A stretch of DNA of 28,421 bases from Vitrella brassicaformis CCMP3155 (Eukaryota; Protista; Chromerida): positions 1 to 28,421 of the forward strand of contig CDMY01000710.1 in NCBI GenBank assembly GCA_001179505.1, in the 5' to 3' direction. Below the pieces are notes generated by a model, which did not search any database, was not told the origin of the DNA, and saw only the letters and a list, made by a program, of their open reading frames with translations. Made by a program: the position numbers and the translations under genes. Of this stretch, positions 2,026-27,488 are shown piece by piece (the stretch's first letter is position 1; every line of letters starts with the position of its first letter).

Positions 2026-2028
2026 GTT

Positions 2029-2286
2029 GAAAAATTTGATAACAATAAAGAAGAACGACCTATTAATAGACCATTCTGCAGTGTCTGCAATATTAATGCA
2101 CCAATTTTTGAACTAATTAATTTTAATGCCATCAGAATACATTTATGTAAGCAATGTCAAAGAAAACAATACCGAACCTGTAAGAAATGTAATAGAAATA
2201 TGAGTATTTACGACTTTAAAGTTTACAGACATCCAAAGTATCCCTTTTTTATTTTTTATGACTGTTGCGAGGATTGTTTTAAATAA
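2029..2286 (+). pseudogene. 5'-truncated Cys-rich zinc-finger ORF (four CxxC pairs)
   Basis: EKFDNNKEERPINRPFCSVC...LCKQC...TCKKC...DFK...DCCEDCFK*. There is no ATG in the AT-rich part, and upstream sequence is antisense LINE. Confidence 0.7.
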
Positions 2287-2322
2287 ATGAAAATATATAC
2301 TATAATAGAACAATAATTGAAA

Positions 2323-2919
2323 ATGACTGATTGTGCCATTTGTCTGTCAAAATTAACAAAGAAAAAATTTAAGTTTCCGTGTAATCACAAATTTTGCCAG
2401 AAATGTATTGATGCTGTAAAGAAATTTGACGAAAAAGATGAAAGCAAATATCTATATATTTTACATAACCCATCTTTAAAATATCCTATAAGACTATCAC
2501 ACAATAATTACGGTATACTTGAATGTCCAATTTGTAAATCACAAGCAATTACTTCTAATGATAGACAATTTATTAAAGTAATTATAGAATTTGCTGATAA
2601 TTTTACATTACCTATTGTTACATTTGATGAACTGGATATTATTAAAAGAAAAATGAAAAGTATGTATCAATTTTTTGCTAATAAATTTGCTTTGGCTATT
2701 GAAAGCGAAAGAACTTTATATTACAAGATTTGGGAGGGAGAAGAAGACAATGGGGAAGAATTTTTAGCTATATCTCCTTTACTGACTGATGAATTGATAT
2801 ATAATGATGATTACTACAATATTGAAGCAATGAGTTTTATTGATTTCTTTAATGTCAAATTTGAGGAAAATAACAAAAAATCAAGAAATGATTTTACACA
2901 TGACGATATTATAGTTTAA
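2323..2919 (+). CDS. C3HC4 RING-finger protein (putative viral-type E3 ligase), 198 aa
   Basis: MTDCAIC-x12-CNHKFCQKC-x~39-CPIC, followed by an acidic C-terminal region; intronless. Confidence 0.85.
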   Translation: MTDCAICLSKLTKKKFKFPCNHKFCQKCIDAVKKFDEKDESKYLYILHNPSLKYPIRLSHNNYGILECPICKSQAITSNDRQFIKVIIEFADNFTLPIVTFDELDIIKRKMKSMYQFFANKFALAIESERTLYYKIWEGEEDNGEEFLAISPLLTDELIYNDDYYNIEAMSFIDFFNVKFEENNKKSRNDFTHDDIIV

Positions 2920-2931
2920 TACATATAGCTA

Positions 2932-3440
2932 ATGTCTAAGCACTGGCTTGTAGTTCAAAATTTTTCTGCAGATAAAATATATCACAAGGGAAGAGAAATA
3001 AACCTACTGCTCTATTAAACTGTATTCAACCTTTTCCGATACTCACTGCTTCATTTAAAGGAGACGGGGCAAATTGTGATAATGAAACGAGATATAATAT
3101 TAAAATTGACCAACTGAATAATATAGATTTTGATTATTTAACTATTGATGAAGAAGAAAAGAAAAGTTTTAAATTCAGCACACAGGGTTATTATTATGCT
3201 AAAATTCACTGCTTGCAGAGTGATAATGATGATTTGCAAAACAGATATGTAATAGGTTTAACAAAAGAAAATATTGAAGACTTTGAATATCATTATCCAT
3301 TTCTTGAATATTGCTCTCTGCCGTTCTATATTACTGATATAGATAATGAATATCAACTTACATATTTAGCTAATAATACATTGAAAAAAGATTATAGGTT
3401 TAATGAAAAGTTCAAATGCTTTCTATTCAGATATCAGTAG
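2932..3440 (+). pseudogene. Frameshifted hypothetical gene of the AT-rich island (~170 aa if repaired)
   Basis: The ATG 2932 frame (MSKHWLVVQNFSADKIYHKGREINLLLY*) stops at ~3018. A second frame is open 2976-3440 (PTALLNCIQPFPILTASFKG...FKCFLFRYQ*), so the two overlap and one indel would join them. Confidence 0.6.
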
Positions 3441-3558
3441 GAGGGGGTTGTGTTATTTTAGGTGGAGGTTCAGGAGTTGTAGAACGTAGATATTTTTTTT
3501 CTGGGTCTTTCCATATCCAACCCAAAAATAGGGCTCTAATAATAGCAGATGGTGGCAT
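3427..3558 (-). CDS. Small hypothetical ORF, 43 aa, Pro-rich C-terminus
   Basis: MPPSAIIRALFLGWIWKDPEKKYLRSTTPEPPPKITQPPPTDI*. It exactly fills the gap between neighbouring ORFs and is below the ORF-track cut-off. Confidence 0.4.
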   Translation of the reverse strand: MPPSAIIRALFLGWIWKDPEKKYLRSTTPEPPPKITQPPPTDI

Positions 3559-3567
3559 TTATATATA

Positions 3568-4065
3568 ATGGAATGTAATAAATGTAAAACTAAAAAGGAT
3601 AAATCTGAATATTATGTATGTAATGGAAGAATAAGATTAATCTGTAAAGAATGTAGAAAGATAATTGATAAAGAAAAGCATGAAAGAACAAAAGAAAGAA
3701 ATATTAAATGTTTCCCTGAATATCCAAAAATAAAAAAATGTATCTACTGCAAAATAATTAAACCGAGAACAGAAATGGTTAAAAATATATCAAAAGATGA
3801 TGGCATGAATTCTTACTGCATTGAATGCTCCCGTCAAAGAAGACGTAAGAAATTAAGAATAGAAAAGGAAACAAAACCAAAAGTTAAATTTATTAATTAT
3901 TTTAGTATAAAATGTAGAAAATGTGAATTAGTGAAATCGGTAATTGAATATGGAACAAATAAATTCAGTAAAGCAGGATATGATGGAGTATGTATAAAAT
4001 GTATTAGAAATAATATAGATGACAGAAATAGAACTTACAAAAGAATTAGTGGCAGGATTTACTAA
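3568..4065 (+). CDS. Protein with three tandem CxxC-x(19-23)-CxxC zinc-finger modules, 165 aa
   Basis: Modules are CNKC..K...CKEC, CIYCKIIK..E..KN.SKDDG...CIEC and CRKCELVK..E..TNKFSKAGYDGVCIKC; the protein is Lys/Arg-rich. Confidence 0.8.
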   Translation: MECNKCKTKKDKSEYYVCNGRIRLICKECRKIIDKEKHERTKERNIKCFPEYPKIKKCIYCKIIKPRTEMVKNISKDDGMNSYCIECSRQRRRKKLRIEKETKPKVKFINYFSIKCRKCELVKSVIEYGTNKFSKAGYDGVCIKCIRNNIDDRNRTYKRISGRIY

Positions 4066-4099
4066 CTACTGGCAGGATGAAAAGACCAGAGATATTGTA

Positions 4100-4189
4100 A
4101 TGATGATTTTATTAGGTTTAATAGTATTATTTACCTGTATTAATTTAATATTAAATATTAGAGTTCATAGACGTATTACATCGCTTTGA
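4100..4189 (+). CDS. Putative 29-aa hydrophobic micro-ORF
   Basis: MMILLGLIVLFTCINLILNIRVHRRITSL*. AT-rich DNA produces such ORFs by chance. Confidence 0.25.
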   Translation: MMILLGLIVLFTCINLILNIRVHRRITSL

Positions 4190-4274
4190 ATAGAGGTGTT
4201 AATATAAGAGTTAAAACAAACAATAAAACTAATATAAATGCTCCTATTATTCCTAATATATCACTTGAATTCAT
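4176..4274 (-). CDS. Putative 32-aa single-TM micro-ORF
   Basis: MNSSDILGIIGAFILVLLFVLTLILTPLFKAM*, with a hydrophobic run of about 22 residues. Confidence 0.35.
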   Translation of the reverse strand: MNSSDILGIIGAFILVLLFVLTLILTPLFKAM

Positions 4275-4360
4275 ATATAATAAATCGCATTTTTTGTTCG
4301 CCACCCCTCTCCCCTTTTCCACCCCCCCTGCTCATCCTGTCCATTCTCATTTAAAAAATA

Positions 4361-4470
4361 AAACCCACATATATATAGGTGGGTTTCATACCCTATCACA
4401 TGGAAACGTACCCTTGACCCCAGGGGACTGAAAGAACCCTTGGGTCAAGGTACGTTTCCATGTATATACA
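4361..4470. repeat. Cluster of inverted repeats at the right end of the AT-rich island
   Basis: aaacccac(4361-68)/gtgggttt(4379-86); acatggaaacgtacccttgaccc(4398-4420)/gggtcaaggtacgtttccatgt(4442-63) with a 1-nt bulge; perfect palindrome tgtatataca (4461-70). Confidence 0.9.
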
Positions 4471-5322
4471 ACACATGAGCTTCTTTTCTGAGTTGTTCGA
4501 CCTTCAAGCTTTCGACGGCGAATCATTCATTGAGTGATTTGAGAAGAATGAGTGAATCATTCATCATTCTTGAATGAGGTGGAGCGAGAGATGAGTGCCC
4601 TGCAGGCTATGGCAGAGGAGGATAGTGGTGAGCAGGTGAACGTAGAGATCGATTGAGGTGTGTTGGTGTGGGATGACTATCTCTGTATGATAAATCTGTG
4701 TTTTTGGACATTCCATCACTCAATCTGTCGATTGCTCGTCGCATTCCATCACTCATTCGCCAGTGAATCACTCCTGGTTGTCTGTCTCGCCCAAGCAACG
4801 CTCAAGCACTTGCTTTGCTCGCGCTCCTCATCCTCGCCGCGCCGGCCGGGTTGCTTTTTTTTCTTTTTTCCGGGCCAAGCTCGACGCCAGGCGAGTCAGG
4901 TGGCCTGCTGGGATGCCCTGGTGACTCAGACGGGCAAGCAGAAGGCGTGTGAATTTGGTCGCTTAAATGGGAAAACGCTTATATGGGAAAAACGCTATAT
5001 GGGACATGAAATTTCCCTCCTCCGTCGGGCTGGCGGGACTCGCTCGCATTCCCGAAACGAAATGCAAAGTCCCCATGCATGCAAAGCCCCAAAGCTCGCA
5101 TGCAAGCCCCCGCAAGGGAACCGAAGGGAATTGCTAGCTTGGCCCCAATTACGGACAAACAAACAAAGGAACACTTTGTTGCGTAAGAGCGTGCCACGCT
5201 CGTGAAACTCGCGAGTCCCGAACCCTGAGCCCTGTCCCATTTATCCTACCCTGACAGTAAACAAAGGAGCATGTAGTGATAAGGCATAGCTCTCTTTTTC
5301 ACTACTTGAACTTAGTCACAGA

Positions 5323-5603
5323 CTAGTATTGTGTCGGCCGCCTTCGGCGGCCGTGGATCCCGAGGAGCTCAACCTGGAGCGGGCAAAGTAATAGGTTGAC
5401 AACGCCACCTCGGCGCACGTCTGTATAGGTTAGGGTCTAGGGTTTAGAGTTTGAATTGCACTGGGCTCCTGAGACACTGTGCCGCACGATTCGAGAAGCA
5501 CACCGCTCGAACCACCGGCCGGCGCTTGACATCGCCATGAAGCGAAAAAGGAAACCCTAAATGTGCACCTTTGGGGTTTCCTGCGTCGTTACCTGTAGTG
5601 GGA
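5323..5603 (-). mobile_element. Non-autonomous Helitron, 281 bp
   Basis: The minus strand reads A|TCCCACTAC...cggccgcc-gaa-ggcggccg-8 nt-CTAG|T. That gives 5' TC, a 3' GC-rich hairpin (5335-5353), CTAG (5323-26), an AT target and no TSD. Confidence 0.8.
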
Positions 5604-5668
5604 TGTATGACGTACTTTTATAAACATACTGTCATATGCACTATATCTGTATACTTGTTTCGTCATAG

Positions 5669-6120
5669 GCCACATACCAAGGGCCTTCTGGGAGACCCCG
5701 TACATTGTCATAAGACACTCGGGAGGCAGACTCTGGGATCTAGGACGTAGGCCTGGTCATATGTACGTGGGTGTGCCTGCGTTTGTGAATGCCTGTGGCT
5801 GTATTTGTGTGTATCCTGCAGATGCTAATTCTTTGGAGGAGACAGATGACAACGGTGTCATAGTCTCTCTGCGAGCACCCTCACAGGCTATAAAGATCAA
5901 CCGGTATGTCAGTGTGTATGGTATCACATCACATGTACACCGATCTGAGCCATCTGCGTTTTCGATGTGCAGCGACACTGGGAAAATTGAGTGGCGTCTT
6001 GGCGGCGAAAGTGCGGACTTTAAGATTATCAACGATCCCCACGGCAGATTCATAGGCCAACACGACATAAGGGCTCCCGGTGGCAATCGGATCACTGTGT
6101 TTGACAATGCTCAAAAAGGT
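5669..6120 (+). pseudogene. Arylsulfotransferase (ASST, PAPS-independent) gene fragment, 3 exons
   Basis: Exons 5669-5746, 5822-5903 and 5973-~6120 with GT-AG introns splice to LWDLGHANSLEETDDNGVIVSLRAPSQAIKINRDTGKIEWRLGG...QHDIR...ITVFDN. This matches the ASST pattern WD-x2-H-x-NS / TG-x3-W-x-LGG / QHD / FDN. N- and C-terminal exons were not found. Confidence 0.75.
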
Positions 6121-6535
6121 GGCGGTCTATGGATAACCGCTCAGTTTGCTGTGATGAGGCGGCCAAGTCGACTACATACTGTACTGTAGAGCCCCTCAAC
6201 AGCGTCATTCAATCAACGACTCAAATCATTCATTCATTCATGCATTCGTTGACCACTCATCCATTCACTCATTCGCTGACCAATCTCGAGTCTGGTTCAA
6301 TGAGGAGAAGTCTGTTTTCGGTGAGAACGTGTCAGGAGATGAAGGGATGGGTCAAACAAGCCAAGAGATGGAGCAAGTGGATCAAGACTGATGAGGGAGA
6401 TGTGCCTTGTCGTCTGTAGTAGGTGAGTCGTGTGTTTGTCTGATTCATTCATCGCATGTGATTGAGTGAATGACTGAACAGAACACGTCATGATGGAAAT
6501 CACGCAATATAATCAATCATTTACGATCATCACAG

Positions 6536-7560
6536 TCATATCATTGGTACGGCGACAGCGATGGCATGATTGATTGCCTCTGCGCCGAGCCCCCCCCCCC
6601 CTCCATGCACGGCGAAACCTTCCTTCATGAACCGAGCCAGCTCGTGCTCGCCTTGCGCATCGTCGTTCTCGTCTTCGGAAGGCGAGGGCCGCCGGCGGGA
6701 ATGAGATTGGGCCTCCCTTGACGCTGAAGCGGCCGCATCGTTGTCGCGAAGTCGAGCTGGCCCTTGTTGCCATGACATGGGCGGCGGGTTGCCCTTGGCA
6801 GTGCGAGTCCCTGCGTCAGGACCGTCCATCAGCAGCTGGCGAGTGCGCAGACGCCCAACGACCTGCACACACCCATCCATCCATCCATGCATGTACAAGT
6901 GGGTACGTATATATATGTGTGTCTGTCTGTGTACGTGTGAGGTGTTGGATCTCTCCTCCTCCCTCTGTGTGTACCTGGTGTGATTGTGTGCGGTGAGTGC
7001 TTCAGTTGGGTGAAGCAGCGGCGCCCTCAGACAAGCAGAACCACGAGAAACTTCCTATCGAAGGTCCGCGACAGAGAAAAGAGTGAAGGTGAGAGTGATT
7101 GACTGTCATGCTTGACTTCCTCGTGTGATTCACCTTGTGCAGCATCGAGTTGGCGTCACGCCGGTGATCAGGCGAGCAGAGATCTGCTGACGGTGGGCTC
7201 AGAGGCGGGGGGGTGAGTGTTGCGGGACATCTTGTTCGCTCCGCAGCGGTTGATGCAGGTGCTGTAGGTGAGTCAATCGGGCGAGAGAGTGAGAGCGGTG
7301 GCCGAGGGCTGTCTGTGTGCCCGGCGGCGAGGTGGGCGGAGCTGTCTGTGGCGTGCTGTGACTCCCGGTAGAAGGTCACTTAGGGAAATATCTTGAAGGT
7401 GAGGTCGCAGAGAGGATCTGAGAGCACCATGTGACGCAGCGCGACGAGCTGCGCATGTTGGTATACCCAGAATGTGGCTGCGGCGCTTCCTCGTCGATTT
7501 GGTTCTGCCCTTGTAATCGAGGAGAAACTCCATGATGGGGTTTCTCATCCTTTTGAGGGT
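6536..7560 (-). pseudogene. Hypothetical low-complexity spliced gene remnant
   Basis: Exon-like Pro/Ser/Arg-rich blocks are separated by gt..ag introns with ca/tc tracts (for example the acceptor at ~6860). I could not build a stop-free model and recognised no domain. Confidence 0.3.
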
Positions 7561-8103
7561 TTGTTCACATACGGCACTTCTGTTTGTCTCAATCTTCCCC
7601 CTCCCCCCCATCGTTTATCGTGTGCGTGGTAGGTCTGCAAAAAGCACCTGCCACTTGGGACGTGCGCGACACCAAAGTAAAAAAGGCATGCACAGGGCGT
7701 GGCAGGTAGGAAAAGGCGATTGGAAGGGATGCGGGAAGAGAAGCATGAAGGGAGACAGACTGGGATAGAGGAAGGGACGGCCAAGAAAGACACAAAATGA
7801 ATGCTACACCACCGGTATCCCACCGCTACTGGTGCGACACAAGCAAGGGCGAGGAGCGGCGGACCGGCTCCAACAGACCTTTACCCATATTTAGCTGACC
7901 CGCCCAACATGCCCTGTACGCTGTATAGACACTCACTGCATTGCCATCCGTCGACGTATTAATTAACAATTAAACACCGAAGGACACACACAAGCATGGG
8001 CACGACAAAAGCTTTGTGCTCAGATGCTATGGATGCACGAATCAATGGCGCACACACATGAATGCGGGGAGACCCGCATACACATGTGGGAGCATACGAA
8101 ATG

Positions 8104-8323
8104 CGGTAATGCGGCCAAACGAAACATCAAAACACCTGTCAGGCAGACACAGGAGCACTCAGACGAGTAGATCTGCGTGCCAGAATGGTGCGTGACGGCC
8201 ATCTGCTCAGCTGGCAATACAGAGGGCGGCAATGCGGCTCAACGAAACATCAACACACCTGCCAGACAAACACAGGAGCGCTCAGACGAGTAGATCTGCG
8301 TGCCGGAGTCCTGCGTGACGGTC
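8104..8323 (+). repeat. Tandem duplication, ~95-bp unit at 123-bp period
   Basis: aatgcggc..aacgaaacatcaa.acacctg...acaggagc.ctcagacgagtagatctgcgtgcc starts at 8108 and 8231. Confidence 0.9.
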
Positions 8324-8339
8324 GACGTGCTCTTTTCTG

Positions 8340-9286
8340 CCTATGACCCTTGGCTCGTGGAAGCTGATCTTTTGCAGCCCCCTCCCCCATTCAAGGGAGA
8401 GGGGGCGACATTGCGTCGTCCGCATCACCACCTCCCTTTGCTGTCTGCCCCCTCTCTTCAGTCACACACAAGTGCAGCCGATTTTTGGTTTCTCGGCCAG
8501 CCTCGCCGTTCACCAGCAAGCACCTCTTCATTCGGCTTCCCCAGGTCTTCAGGAATGGCCGCCAAATCGCCTCACACTGCCCAGCCGCCTTCTGACGGAT
8601 ACCCTAAGGGTCAACCACTGGCCAATCGCGATCGCTAGATTAGTGTGGATCCCTTTCTTTGCCTAAGGATCATCCCCTATATGAATTTGATTTTTGGGAT
8701 TTCCTCTACCTGGAATTCCGATGCGTGTAGGCAGCATATGCCAGAGCTGTTTTGGTTAAGCAAAACTAGACAGGATGCTCTCGCTTCTGATGCCATTCGC
8801 ATGTCATTCGGCAGCCGAACAAAGGAGGGAAAAAAGGAAACGAATTGTGGCAATCCCTTCCAGTTTCATGCATTGCCTAAACATTCGCCTTTACTGTTTT
8901 TCGGACACGCCTGCCCGAAGGGCAGGCACTCCACTTGTCTCACTGGACTGCCTGCAAAGGGATCTCACTGGACGCGCCGGGAGGACCAGCTGAGGAGTGG
9001 CACTAGGATGCTAGCTGCCGTGAAACCGTGCAAAGGCTTAGGACACAGAGGCGTGCGATCGGTCGATCGGAGTATGATCGTGCGTGGCCAGTGTACATGA
9101 ATCGGACTCGCAAAGACTCGGAGGGCGGGGCATTTCCAGGGCCCGTTACCGTAACCAACCAACCAACCTTTCGCCCCCGGGTTCCGCCTTTCGGAAGGTG
9201 TCCTTTTTCGATCGCCTTCCGTTACTAGGGGGCCCCTACCCCCTCGTACCCGTTCGTCGACCCGCGTTCGCGGGGGTTCCATCGAC
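8340..9286 (+). repeat. Dispersed repeat, copy A (blocks 8340-8665 and 9197-9286)
   Basis: Homologous to the reverse complement of 21966-21645 and 21633-21543. Contains hairpin gccccctccccc-attcaa-gggagagggggc (8377-8406). Confidence 0.85.
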
Positions 9287-9868
9287 TTAGGGAAAATTTC
9301 ACGCGGACTACGAAGGAGACATGGGTGTCTGTTTTGCATATGATGCCCATGCAATTGCGGTTCATATGCGCCCCACATCGGGAGGTCCCTGGGCCACGTG
9401 ACCCCCATTTTTACATAGGGGGGCATGCCCATGCGAATTGCGTCTCCTATGAACGCATGAAAATGCATCCATGGAGACGATATAGCAGCCCTGCAAAAAC
9501 GGGGCAGGGGCCAGGGCGGGTGTCCGGCGCACTGATGTCGGCCCGGGGGTTGCTTGGGGGTTAGAGGACGCCATGAAATAGCGCTTACTCGATGCTGATT
9601 GACCTGTCGATGAGAGACAATCAAAATTGAGTGACGACAAGCACACGAATCAAGTCGACCTGATGTCACGTACACCGCAGGCACCTAGTCAACGGAGGTA
9701 GGGTGTAGCCTCCGTTTTTACTAGTTCAAAGAGGCAAAAGCGGCTGTCATGACTTATTTTTCAAAGAAAAAGGATCAATGGTGCGTGCGGGTGAAGTTCC
9801 ACTCAAGCCAGTGTTCTGTCCCTGGCCGAGAAAGATAACTGGCCGGCCAGGCTATTATTCCCACGGGA

Positions 9869-10990
9869 ATGGATCATTCCCATGGGAAGAATCAGGTCGT
9901 CATTTCCGCCCATTCCGCTTCATCTGGTCGGAACAAAATCATCGCTCTCGATTTCCTTCTTGTCTTCAACAAACAAGCATCCAAGCCTCCTGCCCTGCCC
10001 CCGAGGTACTTCAACGCTTGCCGTCAAGACCGCAAGGCCGCTCCCTCCGGAGACATCACCCCTCTCTACTTCACCTCTGACAACATCAATGAGGAAAATT
10101 CTTGGACTCGTCGAGCAGTCCTTGCCACTGCCCAGCCCAGAACCGCTTGAACCGGACGCCGCCCTCCGCGATTCATCGGGAAGAGGAGCATGGACATCCG
10201 AGTCCCCCTCGCTGAAGACACGTACTTCACACCACCAGTGGTGTCGACCACCATCTCGAGTGAATCACGAACACATCCGGGCATACGGGATATAGTGCGG
10301 ACGCCCAGCTTGAAGTGGTCATCCCGCTGCCCGGCGCTGAGGCCGAGAGAGTGCTTGAGTGGCGGGACTGGTACCGGAGAACGAAGATCTCCTGCTCGGA
10401 CGGTACATCTCGTTGAAGAGAAGAAGGATGAAGCCGAACGGCGCCCTGGAAGTCCCGAAAATTCCGAAAATGACGTCAGCACAGCACGAGCGTCATCGCA
10501 TGAGCAAACGTATCAGACGAAAACTTCCATCCAAGACCAATGGGCGGGTATAGAAAGTGTGAGTGTACACGTATTACTACACCGTACCCTCACCGTTGCA
10601 AGCGTCGCGTACTCGAACCCTATCTGTACTCTATTCCTCCTCGGGTTTTGGACCAGGAGCATGTACTACTTGAAACCTCCTGGTCCATGTACCAGCTCCA
10701 CTGCAGAAGCGAAAACAGCTCAGCACATGATGTAGTCGGGAAAGTCCGGCGGACCATCAGTCGCATTTTTGAAATTGAAGAGCCCTGGGTTACGCTCTTC
10801 TGGATGGAGACAGATGAGTGATCAGATCACTATTGATGAGCTGGATAAGGTTCTTCGCCAAGAGAATGACGTGCCACTGGCATCATGCAATCCCATGCGT
10901 ATGCAATGTGGAGGTGCTGCGACGGGATCGCTCCTCCTCCTACTGTTGAGGTCCGAATCGCTAATTTTGTCGTGAAATTTCCAACGACCT
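9869..10990 (+). pseudogene. Decayed hypothetical gene; 3' part possibly ubiquitin-like
   Basis: Coding-looking segments lie in shifting frames (VVGKVRRTISRIFEIEEPWVTLFWMETDE* / SDQITIDELDKVLRQE). No intact model could be built. Confidence 0.25.
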
Positions 10991-11014
10991 GTAACGTCTG
11001 CACGCCCTGCGACG

Positions 11015-13801
11015 ATGGACTGGCGGGCTGTTGTGCTGGTTTCCGTGGCCATATCATCATGCCAGCAGACAACATCCGTCCCTATTGCGTCAAAGGACAT
11101 TACCCCGCCACCGCCGCGCAGTACAGATGGTCTCGAGGATGGCGCACCGCCAGCCTATGTGTTCACCGTGTTTGTGTCGGAGGATGAACGCGACGATAAT
11201 GAGGGGCTCAACAAACTCATGTACAAAATAACGGACAAGACGACGGGCGCAAAGATCATCGAGAGTTCGGCGCTGGGCCTAACGGTCAACGGCACGGACT
11301 TAGGGCGAGGAGTGGAGATGCACGAGCTTCCCGCGGAGAAGATAGACGAGACTTACGTAAAGATCGGCAAGCACCGTGTGGTGACGAGTCACGCCATGGA
11401 CTACACGTTCCACGTGCTGCATCTGGAGAGCAACATCACGTGGTACCTCAATGTGCGGCTATTCAACGACGGGGTGGCGTTCAGATACTCGTGGCAAGGG
11501 AGTCAAGAAGACCAGATCAGCAAGGAGGACACGGAATTCGTGATGCCCGGTGCGTGGGTGTGACTACATCTGTCATCTATCTGGGCACGGCATGGTGGAC
11601 ATGGCTCGGTGTATCTGCAGATGGCACCTACGTGTGGTATTTTGAGAGGACAGATGGCCGTCAGCGTTACGAGCTGCAGTCATATGCTGGTAAGTACAAA
11701 AGACAATGCACCCAGGCCTCCATGTGTACCCATTGCGCACATAGGTGAGTGGTTGCATTCCCCCGTGGACCATCTTGCCACACGCGAGAAGCAAATTGGC
11801 CACCTATACGGAGCCCCTCTTCTTTTCGATTTAACTGGCCCTGAGAGCGACGGCTGGAGCAGCAAGGGCATCCAGTACGCCTTGGTCACCGAGGCGGCAC
11901 TCTATGACTTTTCCGGCATGCGTATCGAGGCCCTTCCCGGCCGCATCTTCCGTCCCAACTTCGCCGAGGCGACCTTTCCCGCGCCGCCCCAGAGCAAGGA
12001 TGACGGCCTGATTCACTGTCCCTGGCGCGTCGTCATGCTGGCGTCAAACCTCCACCGCCTGGTCAGCAACGAGATGATCTCGCATCTCAACCCCGGCCCC
12101 TCGGTTGACCTCTTCCGCACAGGAGCACGGGACGATCAAGAACAAGGGCGTGCGCCATCGTGGGTGGTGCCCGGCCGATCTGTGTGGCAATGGTACAACG
12201 CGAAGTGGACGGGCCATCGGTTCGAAGATATCATGCCTGAGGGTGAAAAACGGTATATCGACGCTGCAGCCGAGTTGGGCTTCGAGTACACCACCGTTGA
12301 CTGCTGTTGGCTGCAATGGGGTGCACCCCGCGACGATGATGGGTGTTACACGGCACCAACACGGCACCAACCCCCTTGACACACCATCCATCCTCTGTGT
12401 CCGTGCAGTGATGATGATTTTCTGATCCGCCGGAAAGGTCCGGACGCCCTGTGGCCTGCACCCAGCTGGCCCGACGAGATGCCTGTATTCAACTGGCCCA
12501 ACGCCACCACCAGGCAGGCTTCATACACCCTGCTTGCCGACGTCTGCAAATACGCCAGCGACAAAGGAGTCAAAGTCATTGCATGGAAAGTCAGTGCACT
12601 AATAGTGCCCCGACACGAGAACATGTTTGGCGTCCCTGGTTTTTCAGGACGCACATGACAAAGACAGGATAACTAAGCCGGGCCCCGACAGGAGCTTTGC
12701 CAATCTGCGCAACTTCCTGAGCCGCCTTAAGGCTGTGGGTGCCAGCGGTGTCAAAGTGGACTATGTGCATGGCGAGACTGAGGGTGAATGCGTCGCACAG
12801 GGCTGGGAGGGACACATCGCGGTCGTGTATCATGACGTGACGGATTCTGTCTCTCTTTGTGTGGCTAGATAAGGTTCAATTCGAGACGGCATTGATGGAA
12901 ATGACTGCCGAGCTGAAGCTGGTGGTTAATATCCACGGTTGCCGGAAGCCCAGCGGAGAGTCCAGGAGATATCCAAACCACGTAAACCCACATACACACA
13001 GACACAGAATCGCTCACACACACGCCCGTCTGTGTGTATGGCATGGCAGCTGACGCGTGAGGCTGTGTGGGGTATGGAAATTATGCGTTTCCTCCATGGT
13101 AGGTACTTTAAGAGCCCTTCCAAGCTGGCACTCAAGCCCATCACAGCACGACACAATGCCATACTCCCCTTCACACGATTCGTCATCGGCGGCGCCGACT
13201 ACACACCGATGGCGCTCAGACCGGAAATGAGGGGCAGCACGACCATAGTCAGCCTCACACTCAGCCAGACAGCAACCTTTAATCATGTGAATGGGGGGAT
13301 GGGTGTGTGCAGGTGCATCAGATAGCGTTGCTGGTTCTGTTCGACTCGCCGCTGCAGACCATAGCCGAGGATCCCCATTACCTACTGGACAAGGACAAGC
13401 CCCACGCGGCCGCTCTGGACGTCATCAAGGCCATCCCCGCCACATGGCACACCACGCACCTCCTCCCACCCAGCAGCATCGGCGAGCTCGTCGTCATGGC
13501 ACGCAAGACTAACGACGAGGCGACCGACACGTGGTTCCTCGCAGCAATCAACGGGCGAGACGAACAAGTGACAATCGATGCGATATCTGTGGACTTCCTG
13601 GACAAGATCAAGACATACGAGATGGTTACTTTATCGAGTGTTGATGGTGACGGTGAGGGGATGGTGCAGCGAAGAGAGGCCAGGAAAAAGGGCGAGGAGT
13701 GGCAGCGGCTGGAAGGTGTGAGGCTGCTTCCTGGCGATGGGCTGGTGGTCATGTGGACGGCCGAGGAAAGAAAGAAAGAAGACAAACGGAAAGAACTGTG
13801 A
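11015..13801 (+). CDS. Glycoside hydrolase family 97 (retaining-type, alpha-galactosidase-like), 8 exons, ~772 aa, predicted signal peptide
   Basis: Exons 11015-11549, 11621-11689, 11745-12342 (donor less certain), 12409-12589, 12648-12783, 12869-12981, 13050-13247 and 13313-13801 join in frame (2319 nt). Motifs: VRLFNDGVAFRY, PWRVVM, PGRSVWQW, RYIDAAAELGFEY, GVKVDY, NIHGC..PSG..RRYPN, TREAVWGME, HNAILPFTRF..G.ADYTP, HQIA, IP.TW. Confidence 0.93.
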
Positions 13802-14219
13802 CCGTGTCGTTTGGTCATGACGTGATCTCCCTGCAAACTCGTTTATCTGTGTGGGTGAGGAATGTGCATGATAAACAAGCAGTCTGTTGCGCCGCTGGTC
13901 GTTTCTGGCCGGCTCAGGCAAAGAAATGAGTGGACCTTTAACGATGGATATGCGACAAGAAGATGACAACAATGTTAGCACCCACTGGCTGGCGGGGTGT
14001 CTCGGTGTTGTGTGTATGTGCCTGGTGGGCATGGATGTAGGCCACTAAGAAGAAGCCTGCCAGCGGGCGTGTCGTGCCGAGACATGACAGGCTGACAGAC
14101 AGATGTCATACGAGAGGCGATACACGTGTTGGTTTGGTTCTGTGTGTTGTGTGTGGGGTGAGATCCGCAAGTTTGGTTCAGCACTGGGTGAGATCCGCAA
14201 GTAGCAGAAGGACACAGGT

Positions 14220-15159
14220 TTGCCGCTCCGCAAGCATGTGGTGGGCCACTGGCCCGCGAACAGAGGCGGCGGCGCTGACACTCCACGTCAACGAGCGCAT
14301 GAAGGAGGCCCAGGTCGCCTACAGCAGTGAGGCCTTTCTCGTGAAGGTGGCCGCCGCCCTGGGGCTGATGTCGATGGCGAGAAAGGCGTTGTCGCGGCCA
14401 ACCCCGACAAGGTCGATCGGCTGGTGCGTGCGACACGCGCTTTGGTGCGGCGGAGTGGCCTGCAGAGGCTCCTAGGCAATTGCTCCTAGGGCACTGGACG
14501 TGGTTCATGATGGCGAGGCGGCCGGCCCTGTCATCTTGGCGAGATCGTATGAGTTCTGTCGACGACTCTCGATCGGGGTTTGGCGAGGCTGTGGCCACGG
14601 GTCTGCGGCCCTCTCCTCCTCATCAACATTCGAGCACCGGTGGCGCCCGGCTTTCGACGCATCCGAGGATGGGTTTGGGGTGACGTACGCTACGGCCTCC
14701 CCCGACACTGGGCGTGCGGCTGCAGAGAGGGCCCTTCTCTCCCCCATCCCATCCCCACTCAGCCCCCCCGACCCTCCTCAATCGAATCGAATCGTGCTAG
14801 CGAATCCAAGCCTGAGTATGAGCTGTCCTTCGATTCTGACGGTCGTCCATCTGAGGCCCGGCTGGTGCACGAATATGACACAGGCATCCGCGCATTCACG
14901 ATGCGCAGTTATAGAAGGATGCTTGGGGTTTGGGGGGCGGAGAACGAACGGAACACCCGTTGGAAATCCCTTCTACGTCGAAGCGACAAGCGAGGGGGAA
15001 GAATTGATCACGATGGAGTGGAGAACGGACAGTGCAGCCTTCCGCAGTTTTCCTGGGACGTATCGTACCGTCAAGGCTCCGTGGATCGGCACGCCCGATT
15101 GGCATCCCGTCGCCCTCCTCGACGATGACAACAAAGCCAATGCTCTTCGGCTTCACTGA
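14220..15159 (+). pseudogene. Frame-disrupted hypothetical gene remnant
   Basis: Protein-like segments occur in alternating frames (ESKPEYELSFDSDGRPSEARLVHEY.. / GNPFYVEATSEGEELITMEWRTD..LRLH*). No family recognised. Confidence 0.25.
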
Positions 15160-15289
15160 TTGTCTTACACAAGGGTCGCTATGTCGCCCACGACAGCGGC
15201 TAGCCTCCTGTCTACAACGCTTTTCGAGCGCTGCGGCTCTTCGTGGCGCTGCGATGTCAGGCCGCGATCTCAGGACAGTGTTTCGCTCG

Positions 15290-16290
15290 ACAGTGCGGGT
15301 CTCCGTCGACCCACGGCCTCGAGTATTATCGCCGTCATTGTCGTATACTTTCGTCGATACGAACATATACAATCTCGGTCGCTACGCATAATCGCACGGT
15401 GTCGCTTCAACGAAGTCTCATTCGTCGAATCACGACGGCGGTCGTGTCGTATGCGAGGCAGCGTGCCTTCGACGATTCGCAGCGGCATACGCCGTCGATT
15501 CGATTTCGTGTGTCTCGGCCGCTCCGCATTCCGTGGACGTTTGGCGCGAACGAACCGTCATCCGCCGAAGTACGACAGCGGTCTTTTATCGCATTCGGGG
15601 CACCTGCTCTCGTCAATTCAAGGCTGCGTACGCTGTCGATTCGGTCATACGTGTCTCACTCGTTCTGCGTCTGTTGGCGCTGGGAGACAAACACTCGTCC
15701 GTCCAAGTATGTCAACGCTGACTCAGCGATCGTGTCGTACTCAGCACGTTGTGTCTTCGCCAATTCGCGGCTACTTCGTGTAGTGACTATATTATACGAG
15801 TCTCGGTCGTTCCACGTCTGGGCGCGTCGAGGGGAATGAACTCTCATCCGTCGAATTACGACAGCGGTCTTTATCACATTCAGGGCAGCTTGCTCTCGCC
15901 GGTTCGCAGCGCGGCGCTGTCGCTTCGGGTTTCAGTCTTTCTACGTCTGTGGGCGCTGGGAGAGAACAAACACTCGTCAGTCGAATTACGTCACCGCTCA
16001 TCCAGTGATCGTGTCGTACTCAGGGCAGCATGCGTTGCGCACGCCGTCGAGTCGATTTTGTGTGTCTCGCGTCGATTATATATTTTGTGTGTCTCGGCCG
16101 CTCCGCGTTCCGTGGGCGATAGGGGAGAACGAACTGTCTCCGTCAGATTGCGACAGCGCCGACTTAGTGGTCTTTTGCCGCATTCAGGGCAGCATGCCTT
16201 CGCCGATTCGCGGCTGCTTAGGCTACTGACCTTCACGTCTCGGTCTAGGCGCACGAGGGGGACGATGTCTCCGTTTCGTCCATCTAAAGT
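15290..16290. repeat. Degenerate CpG-rich tandem array, ~7 units of 137-149 bp with alternating A/B types
   Basis: Unit starts at ~15290, 15433, 15573, 15722, 15859, 16002 and 16151. Recurrent motifs are cgacagcggtc, cagggcagc, gtctcggccgctccg and ggagaacgaac. Confidence 0.8.
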
Positions 16291-17418
16291 TGTGCGTCTG
16301 TTACCAATGCGGGGCTGCGACGCCGGCTCGTGAGTGAAGGCATGGGCCGTGTGCCGCTGCGTGTCTTCCGTCGATCGCATTGTTAGTTGCGGTGGGCACA
16401 AAACCGTCGTTCCTCCAATGGTTTGTTCTCGACGCCATGCGAGGCTCGGTCTTTATCGGTGCGAGGTACCGAGGATTATCGAGTAGAGACACGTTAGTCG
16501 ACAACAAAGACGTAACGGCGCAAGGCGACACTTGTCGATTGCGGTCTACGTGCTTCGTATGCGAATGATGGCCTTCGTCATTCACTGTACTGCGAGCTGC
16601 GAGCGCATGTCCTATGCTGTGTGCGTTGTCGACCGAAAGCGGATGCCTATTATCTCGTCGGCGTCGTGGCTGTCTCCGACAAGTCTCGTATTATCGCATC
16701 ACCCGTATCAACGCGACCTCCGTCAGGATCCGCTATTTCGCGAAACTCCGTCTTTGCCATCTATGCGAGGATCTCTTTCGTCGTCGTCGATGGGAAGCTC
16801 TGTCTTTTGTCGACACCTACCTCTCGTCTGTGGCACGAAGTCGGTTAGAGAACGAATTCATGGCGAGGCAAGGCGGCATGTCTCGTACGTTCCTGGCTAC
16901 GCACTGGTCGACTGTAGAGTACGTGCCCGTGCGCGAATGTCTCGTCCTCTATCGATGCAGCCCCGTCCATATCCGGAGCTACGGAGCTATGGGCTCTGTC
17001 GTCGTCGAGTGGAAACGGGGGATTCTCATCAATTCACTGTATGTGCGTGTGCGCCACGTCATCGGCTCAAGGTCGTAGCTGTCCGGCTCAAGGCCGTTGC
17101 GATAAAGAGGGAACGCAGCAATATAGAGACACGTAGCGAAACATACGCACGTTAGGCTTTGGCCTCCACACATATGCCAGACGCTCATGCGTGAGTCAGT
17201 CGAACGGAAGCTGAAGGGGGGAAGGGGGAAGATATAGCGCTGACTCAGCCTACTTCCGTCTACTTCTGCTCACCCAAGCTCGCTTGCATACTTTTCGATT
17301 CACGAATCGCGAGTCATTCATTCACTTAAGTCTGGCCATTTTCGGGTCTGTTTCAATGAGAAGGGGGCTGTATCTCGCGAGAACGTGTTAAAACGAGTCC
17401 TGTGGCCGACGAATTAGG

Positions 17419-20400
17419 CTACTTTGAATGGTCCTCAAACACGCGGAGGACCTTTCGGACACTCTTGCTCACAGGCCGGATGTCAATGCTCAGAATGCCA
17501 CTCGTGTTGTTCCATTTCCATGAGCCGAAAGAAGAGCTGTCGTCGTTGCTCTTGGCTGGCCGCCAATCAAGAGCATGATGAGTAGAATCCCCATCACTTT
17601 GGAGCAGCAAATCCGCACCACTGACACGGACAGTCCGATGAAGAATCACTTCAATGTGAATAGTCTGAGTGGTATCCTTGTGCGCGCTCGTGGAAACATT
17701 TCCGTTTGTGAGGGCATCAATCTCTGGTCCAATTTTGATTTGGCCAAAGCCGCCGTCGGTCAAGCCGCTGAAATCGGAAGACACCTCGGTCCTTCGCCTG
17801 ATCGAAGGAACAAGAGCAACAGCTGACGATGGATGCTTGGCTCTGTGCCTGAATGCTTACAGGCGGTAGACAGGGCGATTCTGCAGATCATAGTGATCCA
17901 CGGTGGCCCCATCGTCGTCAATTACTTCAAAAGACGAGCCAGTATTCAGGGAAGCAAATACCCTCACCGAGAGACTTGCCTCCACCTCTCCGTGCAAAAG
18001 GCGGCCATCGGCGTCTTTGGTACCGTCAGTCACGGGCATGAAAGGTATGATCGCACCGCTTTTCGCGTACGCAGGTAGAGTATACACGCCTTCCGAGTGA
18101 CGAAACAGTGAAACGTTCCGCAGCCACTGGCCGCCGGCAAAATGTGCGTATGGATGATGGTACGAGTGCCAGTCGCCTTCAGGCAGGTAGACATCAGTGT
18201 GGGTCTGGCCGTGTTGGGCTGCAAAAGCGACCATAATTTGATCACCAAGCATCTTTTGGCTTCCCATGGTGCGCACAGTGGCGTCAGAAGGGAAGTAATA
18301 CCTGCTCGTAACAAGCAAATGCACGAGAAATGGCAGGATGCCTTTTGCTTGGCGAGCCCCGACTGTCTCACCACAAGGGCGCAATGACTGGCAGTCCGTA
18401 CTGGAATGCGCGATAGGCCAGCGCATAGTAATACGGAATCAACTCATATCTCTGACGAACGTTGAACCTGGATCCACATGGACACGGATGACACTACAGT
18501 CTCTTGGCCCCCCCCCCCCCCCCCCCCCCCCNNNNNNNNNNNNNNNNNNNNNNNNNNNNNNNNNNNNNNNNNNNNNNNNNNNNNNNNNNNNNNNNNNNNN
18601 NNNNNNNNNNNNNNNNNNNNNNNNNNNNNNNNNNNNNNNNNNNNNNNNNNNNNNNNNNNNNNNNNNNNNNNNNNNNNNNNNNNNNNNNNNNNNNNNNNNN
18701 NNNNNNNNNNNNNNNNNNNNNNNNNNNNNNNNNNNNNNNNNNNNNNNNNNNNNNNNNNNNNNNNNNNNNNNNNNNNNNNNNNNNNNNNNNNNNNNNNNNN
18801 NNNNNNNNNNNNNNNNNNNNNNNNNNNNNNNCCCCCCCCCCCCCTCCCCTTCCCAGCACGTACGCACCTGTTGCTGTTGAGCCATCCGATCTCTGCCGGA
18901 GATATCCTATAAACACAGTGCTTATCCTCACTCCCAGGCGGGCACTTGTTCATCTTGAGGTTTTCTGTGTGTACGCGGAGAGGGACGTCAAACCATGCGC
19001 TGGCCGCCAACCATCTGGTATACATTCCGTCCTCTGCTGGATGGGCGCCGTTGGCTATCGCTGTGTCGTTGGGAAAGAACCATCGCTTGAATCCTCCGGT
19101 GTCCGTACCGTAATAGTCGATCCCAACAGTCACCTGTGGCGCATCAGCAATTTATCTGCGCTGAGGCTTTGTCGCTTCCTGTATTGGCATGCGATTCACC
19201 ATATTCATCTGCGACTGCTGATGCATGGCAAGGGCATCAAGTCTGCTTGCAATGTCTCCACTCCACACTGACGCTCCGAACCGCTGAATGCCGAGTGTTC
19301 CGGCTCGAGACAACATGAAAGGTCGTTGGGCTGTCTGGTTGGCACGATGGTTGCGGACGTAGCCGTCGTAGATGCTTCGGAGCCACAAGAAATTGTAGCT
19401 GATTCATACAAGTGCAAAGAAAGGCATGTGTGCAACGTGCTCGTTGGTGTTGTTTCGTTCCTCATTTACAGGTTATGCACATCTGCATGACGCTTCCCAG
19501 AGAGCCCCGCCCCGTTGTAACAAGCATCCTCGTCATAGCGTGAGGGCTCGCCCAGGTCGGTCCAATGAGCAGCGATCCCATTGCTAATGATATTGGGGTA
19601 TCGACGGTGGTCGTGTACCCACGCAGCTCCCTCCGCATGTGTCCAATCAACCATTGAGCCCTCACCCCACCAACTAAAACAAAGAACGCAGATGCGACTG
19701 TGCGCGGCTTTGTCGTGCATTTACGCACTCGTGCAAAGCGATCGGTGCTCGGGGATTGCCACACTCGGTGGCGAGATAGCCCTTGCCCTTCATCTCATGA
19801 TAAGTGAGCGTCTCGGATGCCATGTAGGACTCCTCGATTGCCATGAGAGCCAGGTGGTCACTATGATATGCAGCAATGTGCCTCTGAGGGTCGGGAAAGT
19901 GCCGTGTGTCCCAGTCAAGTGTGCCCATGGAGGACTTGATGCTGGGACGGATGCCCCCGAACCAATATAAATCTGATACCCAGCAGCAAAAAGGACACAC
20001 CGGCAAGTACCCGTGCGTGTGTCCTTCTTCTTCATCACCAAGGACAATCCCATCAATGGGTATTTTTGCGTCCCGTACGCTTTTTACTGCAGAGTCAGTC
20101 TCGTCCCAGGACTCGAAACCGTACTCACTCAGCCACTGACCAATCACACACTCCCCCAGTCATGTCGCAATTTAGCTGACTTCTTACCAGCCCAAACGCC
20201 TTCCTGGGAGGCACAGGAGGCGTGCCGACCAGCTGCATGTACCGAGATCGCACGGTTAGTGGGTCCTCTCCCATAATGACGAACAAACGATGCGGCACAT
20301 CCGCAGGGGTGTTTGGAGTGGCGATCGTCCACCATTCTGATGATGAAAAATCCCAAGACCTAAGCATAGCAAGGAGGCGCCGCGTTCACGCGGATTGATT

Positions 20401-21542: not shown

Positions 21543-21966
21543 CTCGATGGGCCTCGCCGCGAACGCGGCTCGACGAATGGTTACGAGGGGGGAGGGGCCC
21601 CCGAGTAATGGGAGGCGATCGGGAAGGGACACCAGGCAAATTTTCGCACCAAAGTGGAATATACACGATTATGATCGCGATTGGCCACGGGCTCAGGTTT
21701 AGGGTAGAACGTGAAAGGGAGGATGCAGGAGACACAGCGATTTGACTGTACTTTGCAAGGATCCGGGGAGAGCGGATGAGGAGGACTCAGTCATTAGCGG
21801 TAGGATTGGTCCAGAAGCCGAGAATCTACTGTTTTTGATGGGTGATTGCAGTGAAGGCACACCCTGTGAAGTCAGATGTTTGTGCGGACCATGCAATGTC
21901 GCCCCCTCCCCCTTGAACGGGGGAGGGGGCTTCAAAAGACAAGCTTCAATGGGTCAATGTCATAGG
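21543..21966 (-). repeat. Dispersed repeat, copy B, directly upstream of the GH31 start
   Basis: Inverted homolog of 8340-9286 lacking ~520 bp of its middle. Contains the perfect hairpin gccccctccccc-ttgaac-gggggagggggc (21901-21930). Confidence 0.85.
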
Positions 21967-24598: not shown

Positions 24599-27488
24599 AT
24601 GCGCTTCCCTCACATGCATGTGTGGTTTGTTATCGTTTCGAGCGTTCCGATTTGCCATTCACTCCGAAAGACCACCAATGAGACGGCCTTCAGGATTCGG
24701 CCTCCCAGGACTGGCCGCCACCAGCAGCCGTCCTTTTCCGTCGACGTCTTTGTTGACCAAACCGATGGCAACGTCCTAAAGTACAAAGTCAGTGCTGACG
24801 GGCAGGAGATTGTCCGACCTTCGACGCTGGGAATGGTTCTTGAAGGGATCCGTCTTGGAGAAAACGTCGAGATCGAGGCGTTAGACGAGACAGAGGTCAA
24901 TGATGTCATCGAGACGCGGGGCGGCAAGCACTCCAGAGCAAAAAATAACTTCGGTGGGCGAAGAAAAAGAACAAGGGGTGCAAACATTCGTTGTCGTTTG
25001 TGCCATACTGGTGTGGTCAGTCGAAGCTGTATACAAGATTCGTCAAGTCGGATCGGATTTCAAGGTATTTCAGTGAAATTGTGCCATTTCTGCCATTTGG
25101 GGCTGTGTCTTCTCTGCAAGTGGCATTTGGACGTCCGCGTCTTTTCTGATGGAGTCGCAATCCGCTATCGGGTCCCTGGAGCTGAGAACGGCACCTTTAC
25201 CGAAACCAAGGTGTTGGGCGAGCTGACTGAGTTTTCTCTCACGTTAGGCGACGATGATGTCACCTGGACCTTCTCACGGCCCAACAATCCGAAGAGTGAA
25301 CTTGGGTCTGTATGAATACATCACATAAGCAACTGCTTACGGAAAGATTGTTCTGCAGAAATTACGAGGGTATATGGGAGGGAGTGAAGTTTCGGGACCT
25401 CCCAACTCGCAACCGGTTCCATGGATCCTTATATGGGTTGCCGGTCGTCCTGTCCGACGCCACGAAGAAGGCGCCATTCCCATATCGGCTGATCACAGAT
25501 GCAGCCCTCTACTCGTACAGGTAAAGGCAACTTGGTCAGAGGCAGCACCGTTGCCTGCTTCACTCGGGTGGTGTGCTCGATTTGCAGTGGAATGAGACTC
25601 AGAGCGGGGGATACTGGAGTTCTGAAGGTCGATTTGGCGGACAAGATGTTCAAGAAAGCACTGCCCTTCAAAACACCCTGGCGTGTTTTAATGCTTGCCG
25701 GCTCTCTTAATGATCTCGTGAACAGCGATCTCGTTCCGAATCTCAATCCACCGCCGGATCTGCAGCTTTTCAACGATACGTCATACATCAAAGCAGGAAG
25801 GAGTGTGTGGCGTTGGCTTAAGCATAACACGGGGACGCCAGAAGAGGAGAGGCACTACATCGACATGGCACAGCAGCTCGGATACGAATATACAACCATA
25901 GGTTAGCAGCAAGCCTGCGATAACTGACATTTCATAGGATGAGGTATACCTATGGCTTCAGATGAAGGATGGGAGAGTCGCAAAGCAGGACATTCTCTCA
26001 TGAGAGATATGGCTGTGCAGGCCGTCTATGATAAGTTTGGCACCCATTACTGGAAAGAAGTAGAGAGACTGATAGAATACGCTGAGGACAAAGGCCTTAA
26101 GGTTAGAGATGACGAAGATACGATACGCAATGGATAGACATGAAGGCAAGCCGTTTGCCCATTTAGGTCTTTCTATGGAAGAACCACGGGCAGGTTGCAG
26201 ACCCTTCGAACGACTATGAAGACCTGCGGACATTTCTCGACAAGGTCAAGCACGTCGGAGCAGCTGGCGTTAAAGGCAAGCAGAAAAGCAGACACGGTGT
26301 TGGATTGTCGTATGGACACTCTCCTGGATACGTATGTAGTTGACTTCTTCAATTCGTATGTCAACTACACACACACCACGAAGGCTCTGTCACACAAGAA
26401 CCACACACCAATTTGACTCTTCAATTTCTTTGCAGTGAAGCAATCGACAAAATAGAACTGCAAGAGAAGATCCTGATTGAGGGAGCGAAGAGGCGTCTGA
26501 TGATCAACTTCCATGGATGCGCCCAACCGTCAGGTCAGGAGCGTACCTATCCCAACGCTGTTACGCGAGAAGGCATTATGGGACTTGGTGGGTGAAAAAA
26601 GAAAGAATGCTCTGCATCACATCATCTCTAGAAAGAAAGAATGCTCTGCATCGCATCACAATCAGAAACGAACAGATTTGGCAGCAATCCCAAACTGATG
26701 TGAGCCAAAATACATACGCACGCGACTCTCTCAAAAGCAATGAACTCTCTTTCATTGGACAGGCCTTCCCATAACGCCGCTCTGCCCTTTACCCGCTTCA
26801 TTGTTGGCCCCGCAGACTACACCCCTCTCTCTCTCGATGAAAAATACAAAGGACCGACCACCACTGTAAACATGCGCACACATGAGGGTGTTAAGGCATG
26901 CTGCACCACTCCTCCATTGCGCTCTGTTAATGTCTCCCCAGGCCCATCAGATAGCGACTCTCATCTGCTTCGACTCGTACCTTCAGACCATTTCTGAGGA
27001 TCCACAAGTCATCATGGAGTCGCCTTTTGTTGACGTTATTAAGAAAATCCCGTCAACGTGGTGAGTGAAAGACACAATCCCACTTTGGTGTCACTCCGCA
27101 TTCTTGGTTCAGGGACGAGACGCGAGTGCTGGAGCCATCGGCGATCGGCGAGCTGGCCGTCATTGTACGTAGGAAAGACGACGAGTGGTTTCTGGGGGTG
27201 CTGAGCGGATCGACAGAGACTCGGGAAGTGAAGATATCCCTCGACTTTCTCGAGGACAAGGAGTACACAGCCACCATCGTCATGACGAAATTGCTAGAAT
27301 CGGATGGCCACGAAAACACCGTTATGGAAGAACATGAGTGGTTCGCCTCGGCTGAAATTGAGGTCAAGCTGTGGGGGGAAGACACGAAGGGAGATGGGTA
27401 CGTTATGATCCTGTCGCCACCCATTGACGACCGACGACGAACGATGAGACAAGAGAGCGTGGCTTCGTGGGTGAGCGACGATCGGTGA
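24599..27488 (+). CDS. Glycoside hydrolase family 97 paralog (retaining-type), 13 exons, ~702 aa, predicted signal peptide
   Basis: Exons 24599-24953, 25021-25064, 25121-25305, 25359-25520, 25588-25901, 25962-26101, 26167-26275, 26340-26355, 26436-26587, 26666-26699, 26763-26865, 26942-27060 and 27113-27488 join in frame (2109 nt). Motifs: VRVFSDGVAIRY, TPWRVLM, GRSVWRW, IDEGW, GVKVDFF, INFHGC..PSG..RTYPN, TREGIMGLE, HNAALPFTRF.VGPADYTP, TWDETRVL, WFLG. Confidence 0.93.

Follow-up and report, generated by a model that had tools for sequence, protein, structure and literature searches.

Positions 2028..4302 of a 28,421-nt stretch of the Vitrella brassicaformis CCMP3155 assembly (GCA_001179505.1, contig CDMY01000710.1, forward strand; called the window throughout) form an AT-rich island of apparently viral origin. 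We read this island as the leftover of a Polinton-like virus (PLV), a non-autonomous piece from its accessory, right-hand end that is embedded in the nuclear DNA of a eukaryote with introns, and put the probability of this reading at roughly 0.8. Two observations carry it: a G+C content far below that of the surrounding DNA and a gene order that follows the end of a capsid-encoding metagenomic contig.

The closest relative of the island is the 12,847 bp metagenomic contig ERZ23491505 DONG22-1 scaffold_203, here called L002; a second sequence, L001, is part of the same contig. When every reading-frame piece of the island was compared with L002 by tblastn, the island proved to be colinear with positions 10696-12560 (8961-10825 in L001), that is, with the terminal 1.9 kb of the contig. 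Four of the island's open reading frames (ORFs), namely ORF A, ORF C, a small antisense ORF and ORF D, have their homologues in the four genes that close L002, in the same order and with 45-72% amino-acid identity. These are just the accessory genes that lie downstream of the ATPase and Tlr6F genes in L002. A preliminary description of this DNA, made from its letters, had proposed one end of an endogenous double-stranded DNA virus, and the colinearity with the end of a capsid-encoding contig bears this out.

What kind of virus does L002 represent? The contig has 32% G+C and small, tightly packed genes. Pfam searches identified a packaging ATPase of the Pox_A32 family (35.8 bits, 226 aa), a DUF5754 protein (48.5 bits), a GIY-YIG nuclease and a fibre protein of 573 aa that ends in a Peptidase_S74 chaperone domain. 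DUF5754 corresponds to Tlr6F, which is conserved across PLVs, and S74 fibre genes are ubiquitous in them (PMC12220804). A sequence search with the ATPase against the PDB gave no match. The capsid protein was recognised by structure: P0002, a 415-aa product of L002, has no Pfam or PDB match by sequence and retrieved itself alone in a word search. An exhaustive HMMER search assembled a family of 30 members, mostly of ~400 aa and three of them at E <= 1e-10. The AlphaFold2 model built on 26 of these 30 proteins reached a pLDDT of 82 and a pTM of 0.79, and Foldseek comparisons with the PDB and BFVD returned Vp54 of PBCV-1 (E 5e-19, TM 0.72) as well as other double-jelly-roll major capsid proteins. 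The modelled fold of P0002 thus matches that of a double-jelly-roll major capsid protein.

Further contigs extend this picture. L003 (GCA_029979945.1, JARPNI010000256.1) is a 17.9 kb contig that is colinear with L002 at 30-62% identity and whose capsid protein is 50% identical to that of L002. The 13.8 kb examined are uniformly AT-rich (32.6% G+C), and the contig stops at the A32 ATPase, so that the end equivalent to the island is missing. Among the more distant contigs of the capsid family, L004 encodes Tlr6F and a 1259-aa fusion of an SF1 helicase with GIY-YIG, an arrangement reported for Tlr1 elements and some PLVs, and in L007 the capsid gene has genes for an rve integrase and an SF1 helicase as neighbours. 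Because capsid, A32 ATPase, Tlr6F, GIY-YIG and S74 fibre occur together in L002, and rve integrase and SF1 helicase in distant members, the predicted gene set is that of a Polinton-like virus and not of a giant virus or a virophage.

None of these hallmark genes is found in the window itself. A tblastn search with all reading-frame pieces of L002, L003 and L004 matched only positions 2068-4041, within the island, and thus returned no capsid gene, no A32/FtsK-type packaging ATPase, which was found in the relatives only, and no integrase (rve or tyrosine recombinase) or replication gene. Since there is no capsid gene, the window holds a PLV fragment and not a PLV. The preliminary description had noted the lack of hallmark genes correctly and had concluded that the virus group could not be assigned; this conclusion is superseded by the colinear relative L002, through which the island is assigned to the PLVs. 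From the three candidate groups that it listed, the evidence favours the PLVs over the virophages and nucleocytoviruses, as weighed below.

The second line of evidence is compositional. The island has 26.9% G+C, compared with 54.7% in positions 1-2027 and 55.1% in positions 4464-18500, and it is the single true low-G+C block in the composition profile. At its left edge (2027/2028) the G+C content drops from 67% to 32% within 60 nt. On the right, the compositional edge lies at ~4302 and is followed at 4303-4470 by a stretch of intermediate G+C content that harbours two hairpins. Genes are packed densely: 97% of positions 2028-4065 are coding, and the spacers between the plus-strand ORFs A to D and the small minus-strand ORF measure 36, 12 and 9 nt. 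The AT-rich island and the 9-36 nt spacing of the preliminary description therefore agree with what was measured; of its two sharp boundaries the left one stands, and the right one, placed at 4470, has to be moved to ~4302.

The flanks, in turn, contain exons of cellular enzymes, comprising two GH97 paralogues, a minus-strand GH31 gene that apparently spans an assembly gap and an arylsulfotransferase-like exon. Compared piece by piece, the two GH97 copies show at least seven colinear conserved blocks with unconserved spacers between them. This is an exon/intron pattern, and the flanks are therefore regarded as intron-containing eukaryotic DNA, in line with the intron-bearing, G+C-rich surroundings described earlier. 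On the right, the first recognisable host exon is 1.3 kb away from the island, and on the left no exon could be recognised in the adjoining 2 kb, for which reason the insertion looks intergenic or intronic.

The genes of the island differ in their state of preservation. ORF A (2029..2286, + strand) is a 5'-truncated zinc-ribbon gene with two CxxC...CxxC units, 52-58% identical in tblastn to the 109-aa product of L002 10696-11025. It has no start codon, since the left edge of the island cuts the gene and ~25-30 N-terminal codons are gone. Upstream, its frame runs on without a stop codon through the G+C-rich flank to an ATG at 1780, which creates a host-virus chimeric ORF of 168 codons (1780-2286). 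This chimera is probably a chance product, yet an automatic gene caller could annotate it.

ORF B (2323..2919, + strand) is an intact gene for a 198-aa RING-finger protein of the C3HC4 type. It scores above the cutoff for both zf-C3HC4 (31.5 bits, cutoff 21) and zf-RING_2 (28.8 bits, cutoff 27.3) in Pfam, and its translation contains all eight zinc ligands in canonical RING spacing (C4, C7, C20, H22, C25, C28, C68 and C71). The Pfam match spans the first six; the last pair follows after a 39-residue loop, which is within the canonical range. The RING protein of the preliminary description is hence confirmed. No identity was recognised for the C-terminal region of ~120 aa, searches of the PDB gave weak RING matches only, and a single-sequence structure model was unusable (pLDDT 33). 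L002 has no counterpart of this gene and shows a 13-nt spacer at the corresponding position.

ORF C (2932..3440, + strand) is a conserved gene of unknown function with one frameshift; the product of its homologue at L002 11039-11569 is intact, 176 aa long and 57-62% identical in tblastn. It matched no family in Pfam, PHROGs, PADLOC or NCBIfam. The neighbouring small ORF on the minus strand (3427..3558) encodes 43 aa and is 72% identical to the 51-aa product of L002 11563-11718. Its minus frame is supported because second codon positions are the most conserved, with 3 mismatches compared with 14 and 14 at the other two. A TATATA-rich spacer is common to this ORF and ORF D.

ORF D (3568..4065, + strand) encodes an intact 165-aa protein with three CxxC...CxxC zinc-ribbon units. 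They correspond to the last three of the five units in P0001, its 274-aa homologue from L002, to which ORF D is 45% identical in the word search (E 6e-55) and 45-50% identical in tblastn. PHROGs 1035, 2633 and 5558 were matched at E 8e-11 to 3e-8, in their zinc-ribbon parts only; no Pfam family was significant (best E 0.015, below its cutoff), and neither Pfam nor NCBIfam revealed a nuclease domain. With two units in ORF A and three in ORF D, the two CxxC zinc-finger ORFs noticed earlier are both real. ORF E (4019..4189, + strand), a hydrophobic ORF of 56 aa that overlaps the end of ORF D, is doubtful: it was identified as an open reading frame and has no relative in L002, no upstream TATATA motif and no family match in Pfam or PHROGs.

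Taken together, the breaks comprise one 5' truncation in ORF A and one frameshift in ORF C, and there are none in ORF B, ORF D and the small ORF. Searches of PHROGs, PADLOC and NCBIfam with the island proteins gave nothing past the zinc-ribbon similarity. Judged on domain identity alone, the RING protein would most plausibly have served the parent virus as an accessory factor of the ubiquitin-ligase type for host manipulation, and the zinc-ribbon proteins, likewise most plausibly, as nucleic-acid-binding factors. Upstream motifs tie the island further to L002, where a TATATA/ATATAT motif is located within 30 nt upstream of 15 of 17 genes compared with a background of 5.7% (P 2e-17). A motif of this type has been kept in front of three island genes, ORF B, ORF D and the small ORF.

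Does the island also preserve the end of the viral genome? The AT-rich stretch at 4066..4302 contains no confirmed gene and ends in a 17-nt motif (4286-4302) that is identical in L002. The motif lies 221 nt past the stop codon of ORF D in the window and 232 nt past that of its homologue in L002; in the window it occurs once, exactly at the transition from AT- to GC-rich sequence. In L002, too, the AT-rich gene block stops ~10 nt after the ORF D homologue. This common architecture and the shared motif suggest that the right edge of the island at ~4302 would lie at or near the true genome terminus, a proposal that draws on one short match. The last part of L002 (12561-12847) deserves a remark of its own: some 10 nt past the last gene the G+C content rises from ~25% to 43%, and the sequence breaks off 39 nt beyond the 17-nt motif. 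L002 could itself stem from an integrated copy and include a short stretch of host DNA, or it may carry a G+C-richer terminal repeat; the fold of this G+C-rich end was not significant (z -1.75).

Two hairpin-forming inverted repeats (4361..4386 and 4398..4463) fold as DNA with -34.7 kcal/mol and z = -7.7 relative to shuffled controls. They sit past the compositional edge and could belong either to the element or to the host. For the long hairpin arm there was no exact match in IMG/VR, and the hairpin region has no partner elsewhere in the window. The preliminary description had called these hairpins terminal; the hairpins themselves exist, and the attribute falls away, since they are outside the AT-rich part and nothing marks them as element termini. 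A check for a target-site duplication found a single 9-mer common to the flanks (1991-1999 and 4301-4309), and the left edge is a truncation and not a terminus. Both immediate flanks (1960-2027 and 4303-4345) are C/T-rich, which may reflect one polypyrimidine tract split by the insertion or may be due to chance; similar C-rich tracts recur in the window. Scans for tRNA and Rfam genes as integration target or RNA genes found none in the window or in L001.

Several points weigh against our reading of the island as a PLV end. The assignment to a virus group hangs on one relative contig, with no hallmark gene in the window itself, and the physical link between island and flanks is known from the assembled contig alone. 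L002 is incomplete on its left side and could represent a free virus as well as an integrated copy; neither in L002 nor in L003 was an integrase or replication gene recognised, which bears on the mode of integration in the closest clade. The proposed terminus depends on a 17-nt motif that is a single short match with an E-value of 0.007, and the terminal 290 nt of L002 are G+C-richer and otherwise unalignable with the window. Positions 4066-4463 have no inverted partner in the window, where a single end is present, and with L002 cut at its other end too, no terminal inverted repeat or target-site duplication is demonstrable.

Other viral sources share much of this evidence. Giant viruses (Nucleocytoviricota) can likewise have a low G+C content, accessory genes of the RING and zinc-ribbon types, an A32-type ATPase and Tlr6F, and most of the structural neighbours of P0002 are capsid proteins from this group. 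The sole other relative of ORF D (28% identity) comes from a sediment metagenome that has become known for its giant-virus genomes, where it lies on an AT-rich contig of 61 kb. That the island is a fragment of a giant-virus genome is nevertheless very unlikely, as the capsid protein (415 aa), ATPase (226 aa), Tlr6F, fibre and island homologues all fit into 12.8 kb of small packed genes and the AT-rich block of L002 ends right after the last gene. The capsid family, moreover, keeps to ~400 aa, on short contigs some of its members adjoin genes for rve integrase and SF1 helicase, and Pfam detected no family B polymerase, primase-helicase or transcription factors in L002-L004, where only the ATPase and the capsid fold are shared with giant viruses. 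An origin from a virophage (Maveriviricetes) appears very improbable. Virophages are AT-rich, integrate into protist genomes and have ATPase, GIY-YIG, zinc-ribbon and RING genes in common with PLVs, and one virophage capsid protein is found among the more distant structural matches of P0002 (rank 50). The ~415-aa capsid protein, however, best matches Vp54-like proteins and not virophage capsids; searches of L002 and L003 revealed no family of cysteine proteases, although several L002 proteins have no assignment; and Tlr6F as well as the SF1 helicase-GIY-YIG fusion of L004 are features of the PLV/Tlr1 type.

A different set of explanations questions the integration or the viral origin as such. 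Contaminating virus sequence might have been joined to host DNA in a chimeric assembly: the window is a gapped scaffold with an N run at 18532-18832, and the public gene collection has no entry for an exact product of the island. Yet host-like sequence continues unbroken on both sides of the island with no N within 14 kb, so that two false joins only 2.3 kb apart would be required, and an edge inside one gene together with a break in another is more readily explained by a genomic copy in decay than by reads that come from a replicating virus. We therefore consider an artefact of this kind to be highly unlikely. Finally, organelle and nucleomorph genomes are generally AT-rich and gene-dense, and a derivation from one of these, or from native AT-rich host DNA, would do without a virus altogether. 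The chance of this is very small: four genes are colinear with genes that adjoin a module of capsid, ATPase and Tlr6F, and no tRNA or Rfam RNA is present. No organellar or cellular family was matched in Pfam or NCBIfam except for the generic RING domain.

If the island is a PLV end, how did it come to stand alone? A full PLV genome, or its end, would have entered the chromosome, and all but the terminal 2.3 kb would have been lost by deletion or never captured. The fragment could accordingly have arisen by internal deletion of a full-length integrated copy or by capture of a genome end at a chromosome break. In evolutionary terms the insertion is probably recent, because its G+C content has not drifted towards that of the host and because two ORFs, one of 165 and one of 198 codons, have stayed open at 27% G+C, where by our own estimate stop codons make up ~8-9% of random triplets. 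Having no capsid, ATPase, integrase or replication genes, the fragment would be unable to form particles, to behave as a virus or to mobilise itself with genes of its own. Most likely it has no role for the host. A more speculative and very unlikely proposal holds that the source is an undescribed PLV clade and that the intact RING and three-unit zinc-ribbon genes, with their viral promoter-like motifs, are expressed and have been retained by the host, for example in a response to viruses, and are not neutral debris.

The lineage behind the island is very thinly sampled. A word-indexed search of 5.8 billion protein clusters, which covers proteins of similar length only, returned one relative for ORF D, namely P0001 on L001/L002, and none for the RING protein. 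Look-ups of the exact products of these two genes found nothing on record. Pattern scans of IMG/VR with the RING protein, ORF D and the ORF C homologue, ATPase and capsid protein of L002 gave no relative, and alignment-based scans of IMG/VR and JGI metagenomes with ORF C and ORF D gave one remote zinc-ribbon relative, L005, which has nothing else in common with the island. For genes A and C, pattern scans found no relative beyond L002; protein searches were not made with these genes. The earlier suggestion of a possibly undescribed lineage is therefore justified within limits: the word-indexed search gave a single relative for ORF D and none for the RING protein, and scans with genes A and C lead only to L002.

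The remainder of the window offers some further observations. A second dip in G+C content at ~18.3-19.0 kb was considered as an AT-rich island and rejected, as it is an assembly gap of N between poly-C. This N run (18532-18832), with poly-C on both sides, interrupts an apparent multi-exon GH31 gene on the minus strand (~17.8-21.3 kb). The two GH97 paralogues lie on the plus strand at 11015-13450 and 24600-27060, ~13.6 kb apart, and share 25-57% identity in their exon-like blocks; with the GH31 gene between them they look like a small glycoside-hydrolase cluster or a segmental duplication. Three pairs of inverted repeats connect 8350-9273 with 21557-21957 over ~12-13 kb (119 nt at 76%, 77 nt at 87% and 34 nt at 79% identity) and may represent a dispersed repeat or an inverted duplicated segment. 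At 15400-16220 an array of diverged ~140-nt repeats (families D1, D3-D5, D9 and D10) lies within overlapping long ORFs and may be a coding exon with repeat domains. A tandem duplication with a 105-nt unit, 85% identity and 123-nt spacing is found at 8094-8321.

Endogenous PLVs and their debris are a recognised and widespread part of protist genomes, so the category to which the island belongs is not new. What the island adds is that a 2.3 kb sequence free of hallmark genes can be assigned to a virus group by synteny with a single metagenomic contig. It also documents the variable accessory end of a thinly sampled PLV lineage, in which the RING gene is present or absent and the number of zinc-ribbon repeats varies. 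For future searches, genes A, C and D together with the 17-nt end motif provide a marker for full-length copies in the host assembly.

How does the island compare with known systems? L002 shares with it the gene order A, C, small antisense ORF and D, the TATATA promoter-like motif and the 17-nt motif after gene D; it differs in its intact genes A and C, in the lack of a RING gene and in the five zinc-ribbon units of its gene D homologue, where the island has three. At the level of single proteins, the repeated CxxC...CxxC units of ORF D match the above PHROG profiles, which stand for the N-terminal zinc-ribbon modules found in phage endonuclease VII, in HNH proteins and in Lar-like proteins; in ORF D no catalytic nuclease domain was detected. 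Protist and algal genomes also harbour virophage-like and giant-virus insertions, which resemble the island as AT-rich viral stretches in G+C-rich nuclear DNA with overlapping accessory repertoires. The relatives of the island, in contrast, have no recognised virophage protease or penton and no giant-virus core genes, and their gene and contig sizes fit small genomes of the PLV type.

The closest correspondence is found with the endogenous PLVs of protists. Partial or degraded copies have been described in cryptophytes, Halocafeteria and others (PMC12220804; bioRxiv 10.64898/2026.07.28.741278), and the literature reports incomplete PLVs, differences of 14-28% in G+C content between element and host, and RING-finger genes for both PLVs and virophages. 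The island differs in consisting of 2.3 kb of accessory genes only, with one or no database relative for its genes. Like these elements, it has a G+C content far below that of its host, small, intron-less and packed genes and a RING accessory gene, and its relative L002 has a double-jelly-roll capsid, an A32-type ATPase, Tlr6F, GIY-YIG and an S74 fibre. Partial copies without core genes are common among endogenous PLVs, and the island in the window is such a copy by all appearances.

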